From positions 24,056,001 through 24,120,000 of the forward strand of contig CM119385.1 in assembly GCA_051294905.1 (NCBI GenBank): a stretch of DNA of 64,000 nucleotides. The letters are read 5' to 3'. The stretch comes from Botryllus schlosseri. Taxonomy: Eukaryota. The notes under the pieces are model-generated. The model ran no database searches, was not told the origin of the DNA, and was given only the letters and a program-made list of their open reading frames with translations. The position numbers and the translations under genes are program-made. Of this stretch, positions 1 through 53,300 are shown in pieces; positions within the stretch are counted from its first letter, which is position 1; every line of letters starts with the position of its first letter.

Positions 1-138
1 TCCCTCTTTCCCCCAACCCTAACATCCCCCTTCCAAACCCTAATATCCCCCTTTCCCCAACCCTAATATCCCTCTTTCCCCCAACCCTAACATCCCCCTT
101 CCAAACCCTAATACCCCTTTTCCCCAACCCTAATATCC
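1..138. repeat. Pyrimidine-rich minisatellite of ~22-23 bp units containing AACCCTAA, arranged as a 3-unit higher-order repeat of ~68 bp; truncated by the window start
   Basis: TCCCTCTTTCCCCCAACCCTAACATCCCCCTTCCAAACCCTAATA starts at 1 and again at 69. Each monomer carries one CCCTAA. Confidence 0.9.
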
Positions 139-516
139 GTCTCTCCAAAAAGCACAAAAAAAAACAATTTATTTTGACGTTGATAAATTTTTGTTCGTGT
201 TTATGGGAAACGTTTATTGGCGATCCAAAACTTCGTTATTGCATAAAACACAGATATCCATCTTCTCAAAAGTCGTCCGTCCGTCCCATGCCAAGTCAAA
301 TCAACACTGAGCCGACCACGCGTGGTCGATGTGCGAACGTCGCGTATCTCCCGCGCTTGCGCAATCCGTGATCACGTGATCTAATCACGCCGTGACTGTG
401 TGATCTACGCATGCCCTGACCTCCTTACAAGATTGCCAATCACTTGATAATACTATTATTAGTTTAATGATTCATATTAATAGCTGTTAATACACTTTAT
501 TACAAAATTTCCCGAT

Positions 517-3257: not shown

Positions 3258-4082
3258 ATGGCGGCTGCAGCTCCACAGCCTACAGAGACGACTAATTATG
3301 GTTCGCTTCAATTAAAAGAGACACGTCGCGGTAAAGTATACGTCGGAGAGCTATCTGCCGAATTTTTGCGGATTCCACCCCCTCAACAACCGATGGGAGG
3401 TCATATGCCTGTTTCACAGCAACAAATGTACGCACACCCTCAGGCAATGGTGACTTCACACAGGTTAACTGTAACTGTCATCGAAGCAAAGTTGAATAAA
3501 GGCTACGGAATGACAAAAATGGATCCGTACTGTCGATTAAGAGTTGGGCACGGTATTTTTGAAACACCTACTGCGACCAGCGGAGGAAAAACACCTTATT
3601 GGGGCAAAACTTGGTCATCGGTTGTGAATCGTGATTTGAAAAGCATTGAAGTCGAAGTTTTTGATGAACGAGCATTTTCCACAGATAGTCGCATCGCCTG
3701 GGGCCGTGTTGTTTTATCGCAGGATGTAAAGAAAGGGAAGAGCGAAGACGATTGGTGGCCTTTATCAGGGAAGTTAGGGGATGAAAAAGAAGGGATGATT
3801 CATCTGCAAATAACAATGAAGAAAGAACAGCGACCCGCGTACCCCCAGTTTATGATGCCTCAGATGATGATGCAAGCACCCAGTTATGTGATACCTCCCG
3901 GTATCCAAATAGGAGGGATGACGCCAGCGCCAAGGCCGCAACCTCCTCCCGTCACAGAGGAAGATGTGAGACAAATGAAGGAAATGTTTCCAAATACGGA
4001 CAATGATGTTATAAAGACTGTGCTTGACGCGAGTGGCGGTAACAAAGATGCAGCGATAAATTCGCTTCTCACAATGCAATGA
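3258..4082 (+). CDS. TOLLIP: Toll-interacting protein (N-terminal Tom1-binding region, C2 domain, C-terminal CUE domain); single coding exon, 274 aa
   Basis: RGKVYVGELSAEFLRI N-terminal motif, KGYGMTKMDPYCRLRVGHGIFETPTATSGGKTPYW C2 core, and MFPNTDNDVIKTVLDASGGNKDAAINSLLTM CUE domain. AATAAA lies at about 4218. Confidence 0.96.
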   Translation: MAAAAPQPTETTNYGSLQLKETRRGKVYVGELSAEFLRIPPPQQPMGGHMPVSQQQMYAHPQAMVTSHRLTVTVIEAKLNKGYGMTKMDPYCRLRVGHGIFETPTATSGGKTPYWGKTWSSVVNRDLKSIEVEVFDERAFSTDSRIAWGRVVLSQDVKKGKSEDDWWPLSGKLGDEKEGMIHLQITMKKEQRPAYPQFMMPQMMMQAPSYVIPPGIQIGGMTPAPRPQPPPVTEEDVRQMKEMFPNTDNDVIKTVLDASGGNKDAAINSLLTMQ

Positions 4083-4674
4083 CATTCATTTTTATCTGAT
4101 CTGCTCGGATAGTATCATTACATGCTTGGCAAAATCGAGTACCCGTGTGATTTGATTCTGAATCGAGTATTAGGCTTCCAGTAACACTCATTGTGTAGTG
4201 TCGCTGTGAAAGATTCAAATAAACGACGATAAAGAAAACAATGCCAGTTTTATATCACATTAAAGATGATTCTGTGTTTTTTGGACCATACCTATTTCAT
4301 TGCACTTGTGGCAATGCTGTGCTAATTTAGATCGCAACTTTACATTACAGAGATGTCACATTTATGCTAACGTTTGTAGCCTTTTACTACATGTTTCGAA
4401 TACTGCAATACGATTAATCGAAGTTTCAAGGATTCCACGACTGGAAAATTGTATAAAAACTATACTTCCCGCTTGACTCAAATTGTCGTGCCCAGCCCAA
4501 ATTATCATGAGATGCCTTTGCTCGATTGTGATCATATTTCTAATTTCATAATCATTAATATTCTACAATTTGAAACTGCTTTTGAGATTTTTATTCCAGC
4601 GTCTTACTTTATACGTTAACTCCATCGTAATTGTATTTAGACAAACAATTATGATCTCATAGGCTGCTACAAGT

Positions 4675-5881
4675 ATGCTGGAAGAATCGGAAGTCCTGAA
4701 GGTGGTCCTTATTGGAGATGGAGGAGTTGGAAAGAGTTCTCTCATGAGCCGTTACATCACAGGGAAATATGATGCAGACTCCTATCACACAATTGGTACG
4801 TTCCACTAAACAAGTTTCGGTTTCCGAATCAGCTCAGGTGTGGAATTTCTAAAAGTTTCGGTTTTAGGATTATATGATTTCTCCTCAATTCAAGCGTGAA
4901 ATTTCTTAGCGAAGTTTCAGTTTTAAACTGTCTCATTTTGGGTTAGGACATTCTAAACCAAAGTATTCTGTTTGCAATTTGTCTGATTTCTCATTTCAGG
5001 CGTGGTATAATAGCCTATCTAACCTAAAGTTTGTGTGTATAGTTGTCTGATTTCTCATTTCAAGCGTGGAATTCCTCAGCAAGTTTCAGATTCCAATTTG
5101 TCCTTCATTTCGGGGATGGAATAATTTCTAAACAGAAGCTTGAGCCTAAAATTGTCTGATTTTCCTTGTTTCGTGCGTGGAATCCATACAAAGTTTGCTT
5201 TCCGAATGTTCTCATTTCAGGCTTGGAATCTCGAATTGTCTGATTTTCCTCATTTCAAGCGTGGAAACTCTAAATATAATTTCAGTTTTCAAATTGACTG
5301 ATTTCTCCTCATTTTGGGCTAGGAATTCTTAAACCAAAGTATTCTGTTTTCAAATTGTCCGGTTTCTCATTCCAGGTGTTGAATTTCTTAACAAGAACGT
5401 CACGATCGGCAGCAAAAACTTTGCGTTACAAATTTGGGACACGGCCGGCCAGGAACGCTTCAAAAGTCTGCGAACCCCTTTTTATCGCGGCGCCGATTGC
5501 TGTTTACTTGTTTTTTCCGTGGATGACGAACAGAGCTTCCATAATTTAGAATTATGGAAAAAGGAATTCATGTTTTACTCAAATATCGAGGATTCATCGT
5601 TTCCGTTTATAGTTATTGCGAATAAATGCGATATCGCTCCGAATGAAAGACAAGTCACTTCGGACGAAGCTAAACGATGGTGCAGTAACAATGGCGGACA
5701 TACGTACGTTGAAACTAGCGCAAAAAACGCAAACAATGTCGATTACTGTTTTGAAAGAGCAATAAGAAGCATCATTCGCTCGGACCAAGAGGGAGTGAGC
5801 ATCAGTAATCTCACAAGCGAGACTCCTAGCATCGATTTAAGAGCAATGGCTCATCAGAAAAAGTCTGAAAGTTGTTGCTGA
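4675..5881 (+). CDS. RAB9: Ras-related protein Rab-9; two exons 4675-4795 and 5376-5881, 208 aa
   Basis: Splicing the phase-1 GT(4796)..AG(5375) intron gives KVVLIGDGGVGKSSLMSRY...HTIG|VEFLNK...IWDTAGQERFKSLRTPFYRGADCCLL...WKKEFMFY...NKCD...ETSAK...SCC. SLRTPFYRG, WKKEF and the terminal CC are Rab9 features. Confidence 0.93.
4796..5375 (+). repeat. RAB9 intron composed of degenerate tandem copies of the 3' splice site plus the start of exon 2
   Basis: Ten copies resembling TTGTCTGATTTCTCATTTC(AG|AA)G(C/T)GTGGAATTTCTTAA precede the functional TTCTCATTCCAG|GTGTTGAATTTCTTAAC. Confidence 0.85.
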
Positions 5882-6369
5882 AAATACATTCTGCTAGCTT
5901 CAGCCTGGAAGTCGTCAGCTCTTGAGCTGTATCAGTGTTGGAGCCTTGCCAGTGATTATTTTCATCCATAAGTCACTAAATATTGCTTACTATGTTTGAT
6001 GCATTCGATAAGTGTGCTCTCCGAAAAACACTTTCTCAGTATTTTGTGATTCTCGCTATTTCGTTCTGTGCTAATTTTAAACTTTCTATCATGCTGCAAG
6101 ATATATTTATATTTATCCCGGTGACGTTACACAATAATAATGTGCATATGGAACCTCCAGTTGTTCATGAAACAAAATCTTTTTATTGCTACATGGGAAT
6201 GGCAGCGAAATGAAGTTCTAATCTTAGCGAAAAACCGTCACTTTCACACAAGATTGTCCGTTTGTGAACATTTAGGGCTGCGACACTTGAGCATATAAGG
6301 TTGAAATTATAGTTTGGACAATGCACTGCACATCTACGGTAGAAAATTTTGATATTTTTCAAATTATAC

Positions 6370-11237: not shown

Positions 11238-13687
11238 GTTTACAAGTATAATTGAATAACTGGTTGGTGGTACAAAATCTGAATAGGCCTATACGTTCAA
11301 TACGGTTACCATACTTCCTCCTTTTAAGAGGTTTTATCCGCCTTTTACAGGTTTTTGAAAACGTCCTCCGATGACGAATAATGCCCTCATTTTTGGCAAT
11401 TCGTTCTCCTTTAAAGCTTTTAGAGCTAAGACAGTGGATAGATTCGAGTTCATACGGGCATAACTGACGTAAAACAGGAAATTCGTGGTTCGAACGAAAG
11501 TGACGAACTTTTTTGTCAACCGACGTACAGTGTGAAAGTAAAACTGTATTTCTGGAGCTGAGCCGGAAAGTTGACCTTTTTTTCTTTTTTATCTTAGTCA
11601 ACCATACCGCAAAGATTGTTCTTACTTACATTATTTTCTCAGGTGATCATTATTTAGAGTATATTCCCTCTTATACTTCACAGTTTTCAGTTTTAGGCAA
11701 AACTGGGCCTATATACAATACTCACTCTTCTACTGACTTGGAAATGGCTACTTCTAATTGTACTTGAGCGGAAATGTACAGCATTAATTCTACTTCTACT
11801 TGATTATTAACGAAAACCACTTTGACTAGCTCTGGACTTGACCGCCTTCAAGTCTAAATAAAAACAGGTTTAACTGCATGGACATTACAGATTGAGATTG
11901 TGATTGCTGGATCGATTTTTACACACAGGTTTTTCCAGTGAGTGGTTTGATTGATGACTTGACTGCACTAAGTCGTTTCGAATGACTCCTTTTTCCCACT
12001 GTATCAAACTCTTGTAGCATCTTGAATTGATAAAAATGATCACGAAGTACGCAAAGGCTTCTCTTATTACTACCCACCTACGTCACAAAAGTAAACCCGA
12101 CTCCTTGATCTCAGAGGCATTAGCACAATGATTACACATCAGTCGCCTATACTGTGAACTCCACACAGATATCGCGGCCCTTCAAATACACTCAAACGCC
12201 TAAGGCGCACACAACTCGCCCTGCGCTACAGATCTATTGTTTGCTTCGCGCGGATTTACGACCAAAACCTAACTTCAGGGTTCGCACATTTAGACTCAGC
12301 TGCTCGTGATATCCCCGAGCAGTGAGCATCCTATGCACCGAAAACCCTTTTTTTTCTTTCACGACAAACCACCCTTCTTGTTTGTCAATAATTCTCACCT
12401 CACAAAGACCACAATTATCACCTCAGTGCTAATAACTGAAGGCCAACTATTATGGGATATTTATTCGAAACAACGATATTCAGAACAATGGAGAAGAATC
12501 GCCAAAGGAAAACGATCACGTGATAAAGACAAAGAGAGGGATATTAATCAACGTTCGATAGTTCGCAAAACGATCCGATAATTTTTATAATTTAGACTTG
12601 GATAACTACAAAATTTTATTTTTTCGAAATCAGATTAGAATTAGAATTATATAGCTGCACAGGTTTTTCCAAACTAAATTAAAACTTAAATTATAGATAA
12701 ACAGTTTTTCCAAAATAGATTAGAATTCGTGAATTCGTGAATTCGTGAAAACTTGGAAATTGAACGAAGTACGTTCATTCAATTCAGAGTTCATTCCGAT
12801 AAGCACGAGAATGGCAAATATCTGCACAGTCATACAAATATAATACGTTATAACAAAAAGCGATATTAGCAAAGGCAATAAGCGAAATGTATTTCATGTT
12901 CTGTTAGTCACAACCAGTGGGAGGATTGACATTCATCTTTATTGCTTGCCAGTTCTTGTAATCTTGGTTCGAAAGTGATTCACTGGTCATGCGGACGCGA
13001 CATCTATGTTCTCTGTGAAGTTCACGTTTGAAAACGCTGACACGCTGCACAATGTTTTTTCGCAAATCAACGATAATATATTTGGCTTTGTCAAAAAGCT
13101 AAGCAAATACTAAGCCAGAAAGGTCCAGATTCAACTCCAATCCGCCAGTTGAGTAGCCATGGTCGGCCTGTAGGCTTACTATATAGGCTATAAACTCGAT
13201 ATTCTCAGAAACTTGCAGCCTATTCGCCTGGACAACTTATATAATCTCAAACTATTCACCAAAAATCTTCGGCAAATAACAAAATTTCAGCCTCAAATCA
13301 ATCTTTTATAATCCCTGCGATCGATATCTGTATTATCTGACGTACACATCGCGTCTTTTGTCCTGTCACAATACTAACATCACCCCCGCATTATTAAGAG
13401 CCCGATTTTGAAACATGAAATGAAGTGTCCGCTGTCGCGTCGCTCTGTAAGCAAACAATGGCTCAAGTCGCATCGTGGCGCGAATTCGCGGCGAATCGAA
13501 CCGAGTGCAATTGAATAATTCATGGAATCAGTCCGAGCTCAAAAATTCCCCGGTTTTTGCCTCCATCGCAATTCCACTGAGATGACAACTGTTTTAATTG
13601 AACTCTGTGACATAATATTCAAAGAGGCGGGTCCAGGACTTCAATCTACAACTGAATAATAATATACCCAATACCTATATTGAAATA

Positions 13688-44300: not shown

Positions 44301-47300
44301 GCGACCGCGGATGGAAAGGTCGCGTTTGTGACGCCGAGGACCCCGGGTACTTTGAGAAATGCAGCGGACATGGCTTGCTGTCCGAGGGGGGCTGTGTATG
44401 CGATGCTGGCTGGTCGGGAAGCGATTGTTCTCAAGGTACGGTGTGGCTTGCAGTAGCGTGGTAGCCATTGAATGATATTTTCATATTGTATATGACGTTC
44501 TTCAGACTTGTATTAGTTCGTTGACGGTCAACAAAAACTGTTTTTTAGTCATTCTAGTTCTAGTTCTAGTTCTATTAAAATCTTTTTCATGTAGGCCTTC
44601 AACTAGAAAACATGTGTACAATCTACTTACTTGAAGGCCAATGAACAACTGTTTTTTGAGTAGTTGTAGTTGCAGTTCTAATTCTACTTAGTGCATTTTG
44701 AAAAGTGAGTAGTTCTAGTTCTAGAAATAACTACCAATGAATCGTGATACCGGTGTTCTGTTGTGTGATGTTGTTGCAGCTATTACTAGCTCACAGTCAT
44801 CCCCACTGGCAGTGGCGTAGTCAGGGGGCAGGTTTTGGGCTCGAAACCCCTCTGATTTCAAACTAGAAATTTCGACCTGTTAAAAATGCAGATTCTATCT
44901 TCAATATTTCTGAGATCATTTGCAATAATTGAAAATCTAATTAGTTGTGTTTTAGTTGGTTAGTTGCGGATTTTTGAAGATCGTTCTGGGTCTAGCTCTA
45001 GTTTAAGTTGCGGATTCGCAAAAGTGAGTAGTTCTAGTTCTAGCTTCAGTTGCACATTTCGTAAATCCAGTAGGTTGTACAAGTCTGAGAATCTTCAAAT
45101 ACTAGCGTGGTAGCGTTTGCAGTAACACGCGTGTTTTCGTGGCTAACACATTTCACTTTTTTCTTTTCTCCTCACCCTCACCACATCATCGAATGTCATC
45201 GCTTCATGCAAACATCGCATTGTTTCGCTCCTACCCCCCTTCACCTTCACCCGTAGCTGCATGGTTTTCACCAAACTCGACCCGGACAACAACAGAAAGT
45301 GCCACCTCTCCTTCAGCTGCTTGCCTGCCCGCTTGCCACCCCCAGCACGGGAGCTGCGTGTTAGGGAAGTGCGAGTGCGACCAGGGGTGGGCCGGGGACA
45401 CTTGCTCACAACGGACCTGCCACGAAAGGTGCCAGGAGCACGGACTATGCTCCAACGGGGAGTGCGTTTGCAAAATGGGATGGAACGGAGACTTGTGCGG
45501 ATTTGGTGAGTCTGACTTCGTTTGCTACAAATAATGTCGTATATTTCGACCCAGCACTAATACAAGTAGTGATTCTCGAGTCAATATTGGAAGGGGGCAC
45601 AAAAACAGTCATCGAGTTCAATACATTTTTCCGCAATGACTACAGCCTTGAGAGTTCAGTACCGATACTCTCCTATTTAAGTAAGATAGGGGGTCTAGAC
45701 TTACTCAATCAGACAGGACCGATTTGAAGTAAAGGCATAAATTTCCACTCAAGTATAAGTAGTGATTTCAATATATTTTTGACTAACTCTTGATAAGTGG
45801 CATGAAAGAAATGTCCAAATTTAGTAACACTAGTCATCTCTTTGTTACTGACCACCTCTACATGTTGGTATGAAGAAGAAGTCGAAGCAGTGTAAATTCC
45901 TACACAACTATTAGTAGAAGTAGTGGTTTCCAAGTAAGTAAAAAATGTGTAGTCTTGCTTAGGAACCTGTGAAGTGAAGTTCTAAGTATTCTAAAATGAC
46001 CAGTCGAGTAATTACTACTTTACTCCTGACCACCTCTGACCGGAAGTCCCTTTTTATCAGAGGGTTGCCCGGGCGAGTGCGGTATTCACGGGCACTGCAG
46101 GAAAGATCCCGAGAACGCGTGGTCATGTTCTTGCGACGTAGGATGGAAAGGAGTCGATTGCAACACGCAGGTCGAATTGAATTGCGACGACGGACGAGAC
46201 AACGATCGGGGTAAATTACAAAACGTACTAATTGTCTCTAGACCAATTAAAGCAACATGTCGGGAATCTCGGCCTAATCTAACATGTTCATGTTTTTATG
46301 CTCTCTATTTAATTGTAATCTCGTTTCTGGTTTTCGTGAAAATGCTACAGCAGAACTGTATCGTGCGAAACGAGTCAAGCTCTGTGTACAGACACTTGCT
46401 ATACTCTTGCTTATGAGAATGATATGAAGTGGACTTGATTTTTGGAATTTCAATCAATTTCGGAGTTGTCCAAAATTCATCCATTATAATTCTAATCTAA
46501 TTTGGAAAGAACTATGTAGCTATAATAGTAATTGTAATCTAATTTTGAAAAGCTGACAGTTTTCTAGTTGTCCAACTCTTCTTTTCACATCCCACCTCGT
46601 TTCAGACACTCTGAGAGATTGCCACGACCCGGACTGCTGCAGCGCGGCCGCGTGTCGAGCCAGTCCACATTGTCGCAGCCCCCCAGACCCCGCGGATTAC
46701 GTGACCAAGACGGGTCGGATCCCGGCCACTTTTCACGACCGGGTTCGATTCCTCGCGACCTCATCGTTTCAAAACGTAAATCCGGACAAGTTCGATCCCA
46801 GGTACGTGTCTTATTCGCAGATTCTTTCTGGAGGAAAAGAGACAAACGCTTAGTTTTTTTGTTTGTAATATTTTATTACGCAAAAGAACCTCCTAATACA
46901 ATTGAGTAATATATTCATACGATCCCTTCGAGTAAAACACGAACAAAACTTTTTCATTCATTTAATAATATAGTAATGAAACTTTTCTGTTTCCAGACTG
47001 ACTTCAGTTGTGCGCGGTCAAGTCGTGACTCTGGACGGATCTCCGCTGGTCGGTGTCAAAGTTCAGATCCAGAACAAAGCTACGTTTGGGTTCGTTCGAA
47101 CTCGATCCGACGGACGGTGAGTTTAACATGTTTGGCTTTCAGTTGTGTTTTTTTTTTTTAAATTATAGTTTGGTTTAGTTTCAGTATAGCATACTGATGT
47201 CGCAGGAGGTGTGTGAAGTGAAATGAAATATATGAAAGTTCACAAAAATGGCCGGATGTTCACATTTTTTCATGTTTGGCTTTTCGTTTAGCTTATAGTC

Positions 47301-50300: not shown

Positions 50301-53300
50301 GTATTGTGTAGCACAATTGCACTTACGTTCACATTATAGTGATTAGCACCAGCAAACTCTCAGCTAAGCGTTTGCCAAGGGAAGAGTTCATACCCGATTG
50401 TGTTCCAGTACCGTGCATCAGCGACCGTTACATTTTTTCGTGAATCTAGCGTGTGCGATCGAATAGCTCTTGTAGCATGTTGTTTAATACGTTCCTGTTT
50501 CGTGTATTCGACTTTCACATACATTTTGATGATATTTACGTAATGTGTATGCAGTCGATTATGCTTAATTAAGGCGGTTTGATCATGCTCATTTTTGAGA
50601 GAAACGGCTTTGTCCGATTTACGCTGAAAATCAATTGTTCGCTTCATGGTCATGCGTAAAGGCACGCAACGCATTCAAAATACTTTCCAACTGCGTTTTG
50701 GATTAATTGCAGCTGAACTATCTGCAGTAAAATGGTAAACGGCACAGATCGCATGAAATGCACATTAGTTATACCTTCGGGTTATTTGTACTGTAAGTAT
50801 TTCCGATGCCAGATCATCCAGCAAATTCTGTTGTGTAACTCACACGTACTGTACGTATAGTACTTTTTGATTTCCGAACCCACCACCGTAACTAACTGTC
50901 AAACTGTTCAGTGAGCAATTTCCATTTTTGTGCTACCCAATTAAAAGCGACTATATGAAGTTGGAACGGCCTTGTATGAGTTCATTGTCAATTGTTAGTG
51001 CATGGATCGTCATTGTTCGTCACTGTAATCACTCATCTTGTGTTAAAATGAACGAGGTACTGTTTATTGTGCCATAACGATAGGAATTGCGAGACTCTGT
51101 CTGAATTAACCGCAGTGTTTTACATGCAATTTTCACTTTTGTATATTGTATGTATATTAAAGTTTGCCATTGTACTTTCAGTATTACGTTGCTGCCAGCC
51201 CTACCTCTGACGGGACTCTGTATTACTCTGACCCGAACGCAAAACGAATCTACAAAATCCGCAACATGAACCCGCGACCTCGCAGCGGCCGCCAATCGTT
51301 ATCAGGCACCGACGTGGCCAGCAACATGGAGGTTGTGGCCGGAACCGGAGAAACTTGTTTGCCTCTCATGGAAGGAAAATGCGGAGATCGAGGACCGGCC
51401 CTGTCCGCCAAACTGTCCGGACCTCGCGGTTTGGTTGTGGACAGGCTGGGGCGAGTGTTCTTTGTGGATGGGACCGCAATTCGAGTTATAGGGACCGACG
51501 GAGTCATCGATACGTTCGCTGGTTCGCATAATACGGCCTCGTCTAGACCACTGCCTTGTGATGGTACGATCAGCCTCGATCAGGTATGTATTGTTTGTAG
51601 GGCTTTTTGCAGACTTGACAATTCTAGTTGGCTCATTACACAAATTAGATCGAAATGCGGGTGATACAATTCTAATTTAATTTCTGGTTTTCCTGAAAGC
51701 TACGGCAGAACTGTATCATGCGACACGAGCCAATCGTGCTGTTCAGACATTTGTCGTTCTCGTGCTTATGAGAATCCACTCTGATTTGGATATAAAAGAA
51801 TTTTATTCAATTTCCACGTTTTCACGGATTGAAAAATTATAATAGTAATCTAATTTTGAAAAACCTCTGCACCAATAATTATAGTTCTAGTCTAATTTGG
51901 AAGAAACTAGATTTAACTCTAATTGTAGTCTAATTTGGAAAACAATGTGAAGCTATCATTCTAACTTTGATTTCCTTTGGGAGCATTGAATCTCGATTGG
52001 TCGTAATAGAGCATCCAATGCATGTAGTATGGTGTTTCTTACCCTTTTTAGGGCTCATACCCCTTTAGATTTCAATAAAATTTCTCATTTAATTGCAAAC
52101 TTTGCTTGAAGGATTAAGGAATGCATCTGCGTCTGTCAAATTAAAAAGAGAATAAATACAGACTCGAAACATGAAAGTTCTTCTCTTCCAGCTCCAATTT
52201 GATTTCCCAACCGACGTGACGATGAACATGTTGGACGACTCTCTGTACGTGTTGGACTCAAACTTTGTGATTCGAATTGATACTCGAAACGAGCAAGCTT
52301 CTCTCGCGGCTGGAGTTCCGGTCGAGTGCGCTCGAAAAGCCTCGAAAATGTACGACGATCGAGACTCTAGGAGAGCGCCTTTGGTATCGCCAACCTCCAT
52401 CGTGTCATCCCCGCTGGACGGCAGCATCTATGTGGCTGAAGCTGACAACCAGTTCGTGAATAGGGTCCAAAGAATTGATCCATACGGGTGAGTATTGATT
52501 TGATATTGTTTAGTTGACTTAAATATACATTTGTGATCATAAAGTCCTGATATAAAGCTGTTGCATGCCATTTTGGACAACTGGATAATTCTATAGTTAA
52601 TTCTAATTAAACTAATTGAGCGAAATGCCAGTAATTTAATTCAAATCCAATTTGTGAAATGTTTATATGCTCGAAATATAATTATAATCGAATATCTGGT
52701 TTTCCTGATTTAATAAATATTAATTATTATTATTAACATATAGTTCAAGGTGAATTATGCAAATTGGCCATTCTGGCAATTTATTTAAGCGTGTATCAAT
52801 CTTGGCATCACTACCGAAGAAGTAGCTCTTGGTTTCCCCTCTTGGTAACCCCTGACTCCTGCAATATATCAGATTAAGCTACTTAGCATCCAGCATCCAC
52901 TGCATGGTTTTCCAAGTCAACACTGTCAATCAGCTCAAAAAGCTTCTGTTTTTAATATATTTACATGATGAAATGCATATGGTTCTATTCCACAATGTGT
53001 AATGTTCGCAGGTTCCGCATGTCCGTAGTAGCCGGGGGCAAATCCGGTTGCGATTGCCAGATGTCAGACTGCGATTGCTTCCAAGGCGACGGAGATTTCG
53101 GGAGAAACGCTCGTCTCAACACGCCTGCCGCCCTTGCTGCGAGTCCCAACGGGTCGGTTTTCGTCGCGGACCAACTCAACATGCGCATCCGGAGACTCGC
53201 TTACAATGTCCCGGATTCCGCGAGTCAGATTCGGATCGCAAACCCGGATTCAAACGAAGTCTATCTCTTCACGAACGACGGTTTTCATCGAACGACCCAA

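Follow-up and report, generated by a model that had tools for sequence, protein, structure and literature searches.

A Rab9 intron of the ascidian Botryllus schlosseri made of tandem copies of its own 3' splice junction

The Rab9-like gene of the ascidian Botryllus schlosseri, which consists of two coding exons and one intron, raises two linked questions: how did the intron come to be filled with look-alikes of its own acceptor, and do these copies take part in splicing? We analysed the locus within a 64,000-nucleotide stretch of genomic DNA (hereafter the window), together with the remainder of the assembly, sequencing runs from other samples and related tunicates. The intron is likely to be a locus-specific minisatellite that arose from the 3' splice junction of the gene itself and persists as a tolerated by-product, with no built-in splicing switch. 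The coordinates of the relevant features are reported in Table 1.

The identity of the host gene is supported by several features. Exon 1 includes the G1 motif GDGGVGKS and the switch I motif YHTIG, and its end (...ATTG/GT; slashes mark splice junctions) is also present in Ciona. Exon 2 matches the Pfam Ras family (1.6e-37), and its best database matches are all named Rab-9A/9B-like, with ascidian proteins at the top (Styela clava, 67%; Ciona, 56%). The Ras-fold G motifs, the C-terminal CC pair and top matches named Rab9, by which the Rab9 subfamily is recognised, are all present. The gene is single in the assembly, where the next paralogue is 41% identical. An apparently intron-free Rab-like frame (G000:C12:15215121-15215606, L008; 243 aa open), which is 41% identical to Rab9 exon 2, may be either a retrocopy or a Rab7/9-like paralogue.

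Upstream of Rab9, positions 3700-4240 of the window encode the C-terminus of a C2...CUE (Tollip-like) protein, with a stop near 4081 and an AATAAA signal at 4219. An RNA-like contig from run X7 extends from the 3'UTR of the Tollip-like gene into Rab9. The closest relative of exon 1 (P0121, 88% identical) is found on a 3.2-kb Logan contig featuring the same gene order, with YEATS, C2+CUE and Rab9 exon 1 in intron-free form. The Tollip-like/Rab9 order may reflect conserved synteny or a polycistronic transcript. The AIF gene, which adjoins Rab9 in Ciona and in three tunicate contigs (L004, L006 and L013), is absent from the window, in which Rab9 is preceded by the Tollip-like gene.

Table 1 Features of the Rab9 locus (window positions) and of the ASCC3-like intron array (assembly positions)
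Feature	Position	Strand	Description
Rab9 exon 1	4675..4795	+	ATG at 4675; 40 codons + 1 base; from translation
Rab9 intron	4796..5375	+	Phase-1, GT..AG, 580 nt; composed wholly of 11 tandem units (U0-U10)
Decoy acceptor 1	4835..4837	+	CAG, followed by GTGTGG; weak pyrimidine tract (0.63); predicted 60-aa product
Insertion site	4930..4931	+	10 nt (TCTCATTTCT) in X5/X6/X7; restores full-length pyrimidine tract in U2
Upstream duplication arm	4932..5008	+	End of U2, U3 and start of U4; 83% over 77 nt to 5308-5384, offset 376
Decoy acceptor 4	4997..4999	+	CAG; strongest pyrimidine tract (0.79); CTGAT branch-like motif; predicted stop after 3 codons
Duplicated stretch	5169..5188	+	20 nt, present twice in X5/X6/X7 with 38 further letters between
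Decoy acceptor 8	5218..5220	+	CAG; pyrimidine tract 0.74; predicted 47-aa product
Downstream duplication arm	5308..5384	+	Extends across the true acceptor and 9 nt into exon 2
True acceptor	5373..5375	+	CAG; joint in the contig; acceptor at the equivalent place in six relatives
Rab9 exon 2	5376..5883	+	GVEFLNK... to C-terminal CC; stop TGA at 5881-5883
ASCC3-like intron array	G000:C3 ~3571060-3572850 (L017:1060-2850)	-	~1.8 kb, period ~241

The units of the array, which range from 38 to 64 nt in length, are arranged head to tail and yield a consensus of ~57 nt (MAFFT, 11 intervals). Each unit corresponds to the final ~38 nt of the intron plus the initial ~17-20 nt of exon 2. Read along the array, a unit opens with an exon-like head (consensus GCGTGGAATTTCTAAAC), continues through a spacer and closes with a pyrimidine tract that runs up to an acceptor-like triplet; it also includes a CTAAAC or CTGAT branch-like motif located ~15-45 nt ahead of the next AG-like site. 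A first-pass annotation had placed ten junction-like units upstream of the true acceptor, at 4835, 4891, 4938, 4997, 5061, 5111, 5172, 5218, 5256 and 5314, and both extraction and MAFFT alignment with the true junction bear this out. Resemblance to the start of exon 2 also exceeds that of shuffled controls, as the intron contains three ungapped matches to the first 20 nt of the exon at 14/20 or better, against 0.04 expected from the rest of the window and 0.09 from dinucleotide shuffles. Tandem Repeats Finder failed to detect the array even at a score of 30, because the units are too divergent and too variable in length; the array was analysed by anchored extraction, MAFFT alignment and counts of ungapped matches.

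The acceptor triplets of the ten decoys are CAG and CAA (three copies each), TTG (two copies), CGG and CGT. The earlier reading that seven copies had lost the AG is correct as regards the triplets, but strict loss does not apply to the three CAA decoys, in which the AG has moved one base downstream (CAAG) and the pyrimidine tract is good. These acceptors are weakened or shifted rather than strictly lost.

Copies 2-4 had been described as resembling copies 9-11, and this held true for a single unit. U3 and U10 are by far the best reciprocal pair (score 42, versus 22 or less for all others), and their similarity extends into the flanking sequences. Four-unit colinearity of the two array ends, in contrast, did not rise above unit-order shuffles, 80 of 300 of which scored as high. 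A higher-order duplication is therefore solid for one unit and its flanks only. Similarly, the echo of the exon-2 start seen in the donor region is real from ~4806 onward, where U0 matches U7 best, but homology of the donor hexamer itself (GTACGT, 3/10 positions common with the unit start) is not demonstrable.

The array is confined to this locus. When used as a BLAST query against the whole assembly (495 Mb, 219 contigs), the intron matched only itself, and three unit patterns searched across the assembly with up to 3 mismatches were found in the Rab9 intron only. The unit is consequently not a dispersed transposon, a point on which the first-pass interpretation had been made to depend. The window does contain a dispersed satellite of 42 nt (about 41-42; core TAATCTAATTTGGAA) at 12620-12727, 46481-46549 and 51834-51940, to which the Rab9 array shows no similarity. 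The beginning of the window (1-146) is occupied by a tandem array with a period of 21/68 and CCCTAA-like (telomere-repeat-like) cores; a 16/32-nt array lies further along, at 515-623.

Individuals differ in the number of units. Four runs from other samples, each assembled independently, contain the array. Runs X5, X6 and X7, which correspond to three samples from three studies, each feature a 10-nt insertion as well as a further unit of 58 nt, the reference haplotype being one unit shorter. The extra unit is bounded by a perfect 20-nt repeat and is diverged in its middle from the neighbouring units; therefore, the reference haplotype most likely lost a unit via exchange between neighbouring copies. 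The comparison between individuals that had been proposed at the outset thus identifies the Rab9 array as a copy-number-variable minisatellite. SNP density is 1.6% in the intron versus 1.2% in exon 2, where 4 of 6 SNPs are synonymous. Divergence between units is roughly 20-30% (17% for the youngest pair) and that between individuals ~1-1.6%; measured against standing variation, the array is old.

The intron itself is ancient. In Ciona intestinalis, an intron of 139 nt (...ATTG/gt...cag/GTGTTGAATTTC) is found at the identical position and in the identical phase, and five other tunicate contigs (L004, L005, L006, L012 and L013, with L012 being closer, at 64% identity) share this position and phase, with the acceptor at the matching codon. 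Junction copies were found in none of these six relatives within 600 nt upstream of the acceptor (134 nt for L012). The array is hence a lineage-specific enlargement of an old intron. In L013, a reverse-transcriptase ORF (1207-2268) lies inside the ~5.6-kb orthologous Rab9 intron, so that intron growth followed another route in this relative. That the B. schlosseri intron grew as its 3' junction was duplicated time and again, as the first-pass annotation had suggested, is well supported: the unit spans both acceptor and coding sequences, is unique in the genome, is absent in six relatives and varies in copy number.

Transcript data come from run X7, which is RNA-like. A contig of 1849 nt (depth 62.8) joins 4795 to 5376 exactly, skipping 580 nt with GT..AG ends, and this splice is dominant. 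A separate contig spanning 4848-5310 of the intron has a depth of 7, corresponding to ~11% of exon depth, and could represent pre-mRNA, DNA carry-over, retention or decoy-spliced forms. Decoy junctions were observed in none of the contigs, which drop rare isoforms. No reads of the raw RNA run X21 mapped to the locus, and this run therefore carries no information on minor isoforms. A search with the exon-1 peptide, aimed at short products in which a decoy tail follows exon 1, returned only read-through calls from other species, which is not evidence of absence.

Some of the decoys look no worse than the acceptor that is used. As judged by pyrimidine fraction, a crude proxy for acceptor strength, the true acceptor (0.74) compares with 0.79 for the decoy at 4997 and 0.74 for that at 5218. 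Of all copies of the true acceptor unit, the 4997 decoy is the youngest; it retains the CTGAT branch-like motif, which the true unit has lost, and carries AAG in place of CAG in one other sample. As had been noted, the three CAG decoys lead to in-frame stops, with the predicted tails GVEFLKVSVLGLYDFSSIQA, GVV and GLESRIV. More generally, all upstream AGs except one weak site would yield a truncated product, as expected for an ordinary intron. The position +2 past the junction is T in 1 of 10 decoys and C or G in the rest, and decoy 1 is the sole copy in which GT follows the AG (CAG/GT). It is puzzling that the 4997 and 5218 decoys appear to go unused, as their sequence alone does not explain it. 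The likeliest discriminator may be exon context, since a real exon follows the last site only. Experiments in which duplicated splice sites compete with each other provide a classic parallel to this choice between decoy and true acceptor.

Selection removing competing AGs had also been invoked to account for the composition of the decoys. We compared 24 ungapped columns around the junction in the ten decoys. The column consensus is kept in a mean of 7.2 of 10 decoys, and in 6 of 10 in both the A and the G columns. Neutral decay would leave 5.2 intact AGs out of 10, and 3 are observed (binomial P = 0.14). Moreover, the decoys cannot be treated as independent: the CAA units form one family (D2), and the higher-order duplication connects the two TTG units. 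The losses in these three and two copies, respectively, are probably shared by descent. No selection against AG can be demonstrated, and this part of the earlier interpretation is not upheld.

The Rab9 intron is not the sole example in this genome. Two cases were found among the ~10% of the genome that was scanned, the second being an intron of a gene encoding an ASCC3-like Sec63-domain helicase on G000:C3, where 50 kb were examined. At least 4 copies of the junction and of ~35 nt of exon (31-34 of 40 positions identical) lie upstream of the true acceptor of the exon encoding motif VI (cag/ATATTCGGCAGAGCC..., encoding IFGRAGRPQFD). As in Rab9, the end of the intron and the start of the next exon were copied upstream of the true acceptor. 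In contrast to the Rab9 array, the ASCC3-like array has a period of ~241 instead of ~57, is built around the dispersed 42-nt satellite, which accounts for most of it, and retains CAG in all four verified copies. The two arrays share no sequence similarity. Since the two cases are independent and involve different genes and different units, sporadic duplication fits them better than a dedicated device.

Alternative readings of the array were weighed against these data. The decoys might capture a share of the pre-mRNA, acting as poison acceptors or through intron detention, and thereby lower the Rab9 level, with the array working as a tuning device. The survival, with good pyrimidine tracts, of CAG in three decoys and of a shifted AAG in three others, all of which lead to an early stop, is in keeping with such regulated unproductive splicing, as is the intron signal in X7, and human erythroblasts provide examples of decoy splice sites that promote intron retention (PMC6097662, PMC7373989). 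We nevertheless consider this reading unlikely. It meets neither a decoy junction in the contigs nor a truncated protein of this species in the peptide search, although the latter is not evidence of absence; the array it requires is missing in six relatives and polymorphic in copy number; and the AG columns feature neither special constraint nor special loss. Because GT follows the AG in one decoy only, the array does not offer decoy exons bounded by two splice sites. According to the exon-junction complex model, exon-junction-dependent NMD needs an exon junction downstream of the stop. The Rab9 coding region consists of two exons, and therefore every decoy-induced stop is located in the last coding exon and, barring an intron in the 3'UTR, is followed by no further junction; this objection would not apply to EJC-independent decay. 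The NMD-coupled poison acceptors envisaged in the first-pass annotation thus find no support, given the position of the stops, the absence of decoy junctions from the contigs and the lack of conservation of a polymorphic array. A broader proposal, according to which the surviving decoys divert a regulated share of pre-mRNA, array length serves as a heritable dial and 3' junctions are recurrent seeds of minisatellites in this ascidian, is decidedly unlikely.

The repeats could conversely help splicing, the CTAAAC-like motifs and pyrimidine tracts serving as reiterated branch or U2AF sites, or CAG/GT at 4835-4839 serving as a recursive splice point. Such a role can draw on the branch-like motif found in each unit and on the juxtaposition of an acceptor and a donor at 4835-4843 (CAG/GTGTGG), but the relatives manage to splice this junction with no array, Ciona having a far shorter intron. 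Recursive splice sites are typical of very long introns, whereas the Rab9 intron spans only 580 nt; GTGTGG is also a poor donor, and the recursive-site form (Y)nCAG/GTRAGT is not found here. The array has no excess RNA structure on folding (z = -1.25) and matches no Rfam family. Altogether, a splicing aid seems very improbable. Hardly credible is an artefact, whether a misassembly or the chance resemblance of a transposon or satellite to the exon. Dispersed satellites do exist in the genome, as exemplified by the 42-nt family, but the Rab9 unit patterns are unique in the genome and unlike that family, the four runs from other samples assemble the array independently, and what was copied is conserved coding sequence of Rab9.

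The reading that we favour, i.e., a minisatellite derived from the gene's own 3' junction and tolerated within the intron, is compatible with the following history, in which both the order of events and the role of microhomology are what we infer. The starting point would be a short ancestral intron at the conserved position, in which a tandem duplication of ~57 nt took in a stretch beginning ~38 nt ahead of the acceptor and ending 17-20 nt inside exon 2. A short repeat (CTAAACAAG / CTTAACAAG) that brackets one unit probably helped this initial duplication. The unit may then have multiplied via slippage or unequal exchange, and the acceptor unit would have been recopied by a later, larger duplication, until the intron measured 580 nt in the reference and 648 nt in the longer allele. 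In the mRNA, exon 1 is joined to the last junction, the sole one with a real exon behind it; the upstream copies may be pseudo-acceptors that decay roughly neutrally in an array in which units are still gained or lost. The direction of copying can be read from the repeats themselves. The exon part of the decoy consensus (G/GC GTG GAA TTT CTA AAC) encodes the peptide GVEFLN, a conserved Rab9 coding sequence, and differs from the live exon (GGT GTT GAA TTT CTT AAC) at third codon positions only; copying therefore ran from exon to repeat, long ago.

The Rab9 intron thus represents an unusually clean natural record of intron growth, the exon-derived part of which still reads as a Rab9 peptide. It is also a natural instance of competition between duplicated splice sites, in which three intact look-alikes lie upstream and the dominant mRNA uses the last site. 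Together with the ASCC3-like case, it offers material to assess how frequently junctions are duplicated and how spliceosomes ignore good decoys. On present evidence, the array does not reveal a new regulatory mechanism.

Three known systems may be compared with the Rab9 array. Decoy-exon retention and AS-NMD rely on conserved cryptic exons with both splice sites, mostly located in introns longer than 1 kb and documented by junction reads (Parra et al. 2018, PMC6097662; PMC7373989). The Rab9 array is similar in that splice-site look-alikes inside an intron could engage the spliceosome unproductively, but its copies have no donors and are not conserved, the intron measures 580 nt, and decoy junctions are found in none of the contigs.

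Tandem duplication of exon or junction segments, with one copy subsequently removed by splicing, is an accepted route of intron gain, known as the Rogers model (Hellsten et al. 2011, PMC3265369; Lehmann et al. 2010, PMC2891723; reviewed in PMC3443670, citing Gao and Lynch 2009). Under this model, both the donor and the acceptor stem from a single duplicated AGGT. As in gains of this type, local tandem duplication placed exon and splice-site sequences in a non-coding position in Rab9, the coding sequence was preserved and splicing removes the extra copy. In contrast to such gains, no new intron was formed, because the intron position is ancestral; an old intron was enlarged ~tenfold, and most of the copies have lost the AG.

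Intronic minisatellites and internal tandem repeats are reportedly able to alter gene structure, as is said to have been described by Zhuo et al. in PNAS in 2007. Repeats of this kind were also analysed by De Grassi and Ciccarelli (2009, PMC2812944), and the Rab9 repeats differ from those of PMC2812944 in that the contigs contain no alternative splicing derived from them. The Rab9 array nonetheless resembles intronic VNTRs in several respects, as it is locus-specific and variable in copy number, is made of head-to-tail units of tens of bases and can carry splice-site-like sequences. What distinguishes it from other VNTRs is that the unit derives from the acceptor and coding bases of the gene itself and fills the whole intron. 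The Rab9 array can hence be defined as an intronic VNTR with the gene's own acceptor junction as its unit, and it is notable for its completeness, as the whole intron consists of junction copies.
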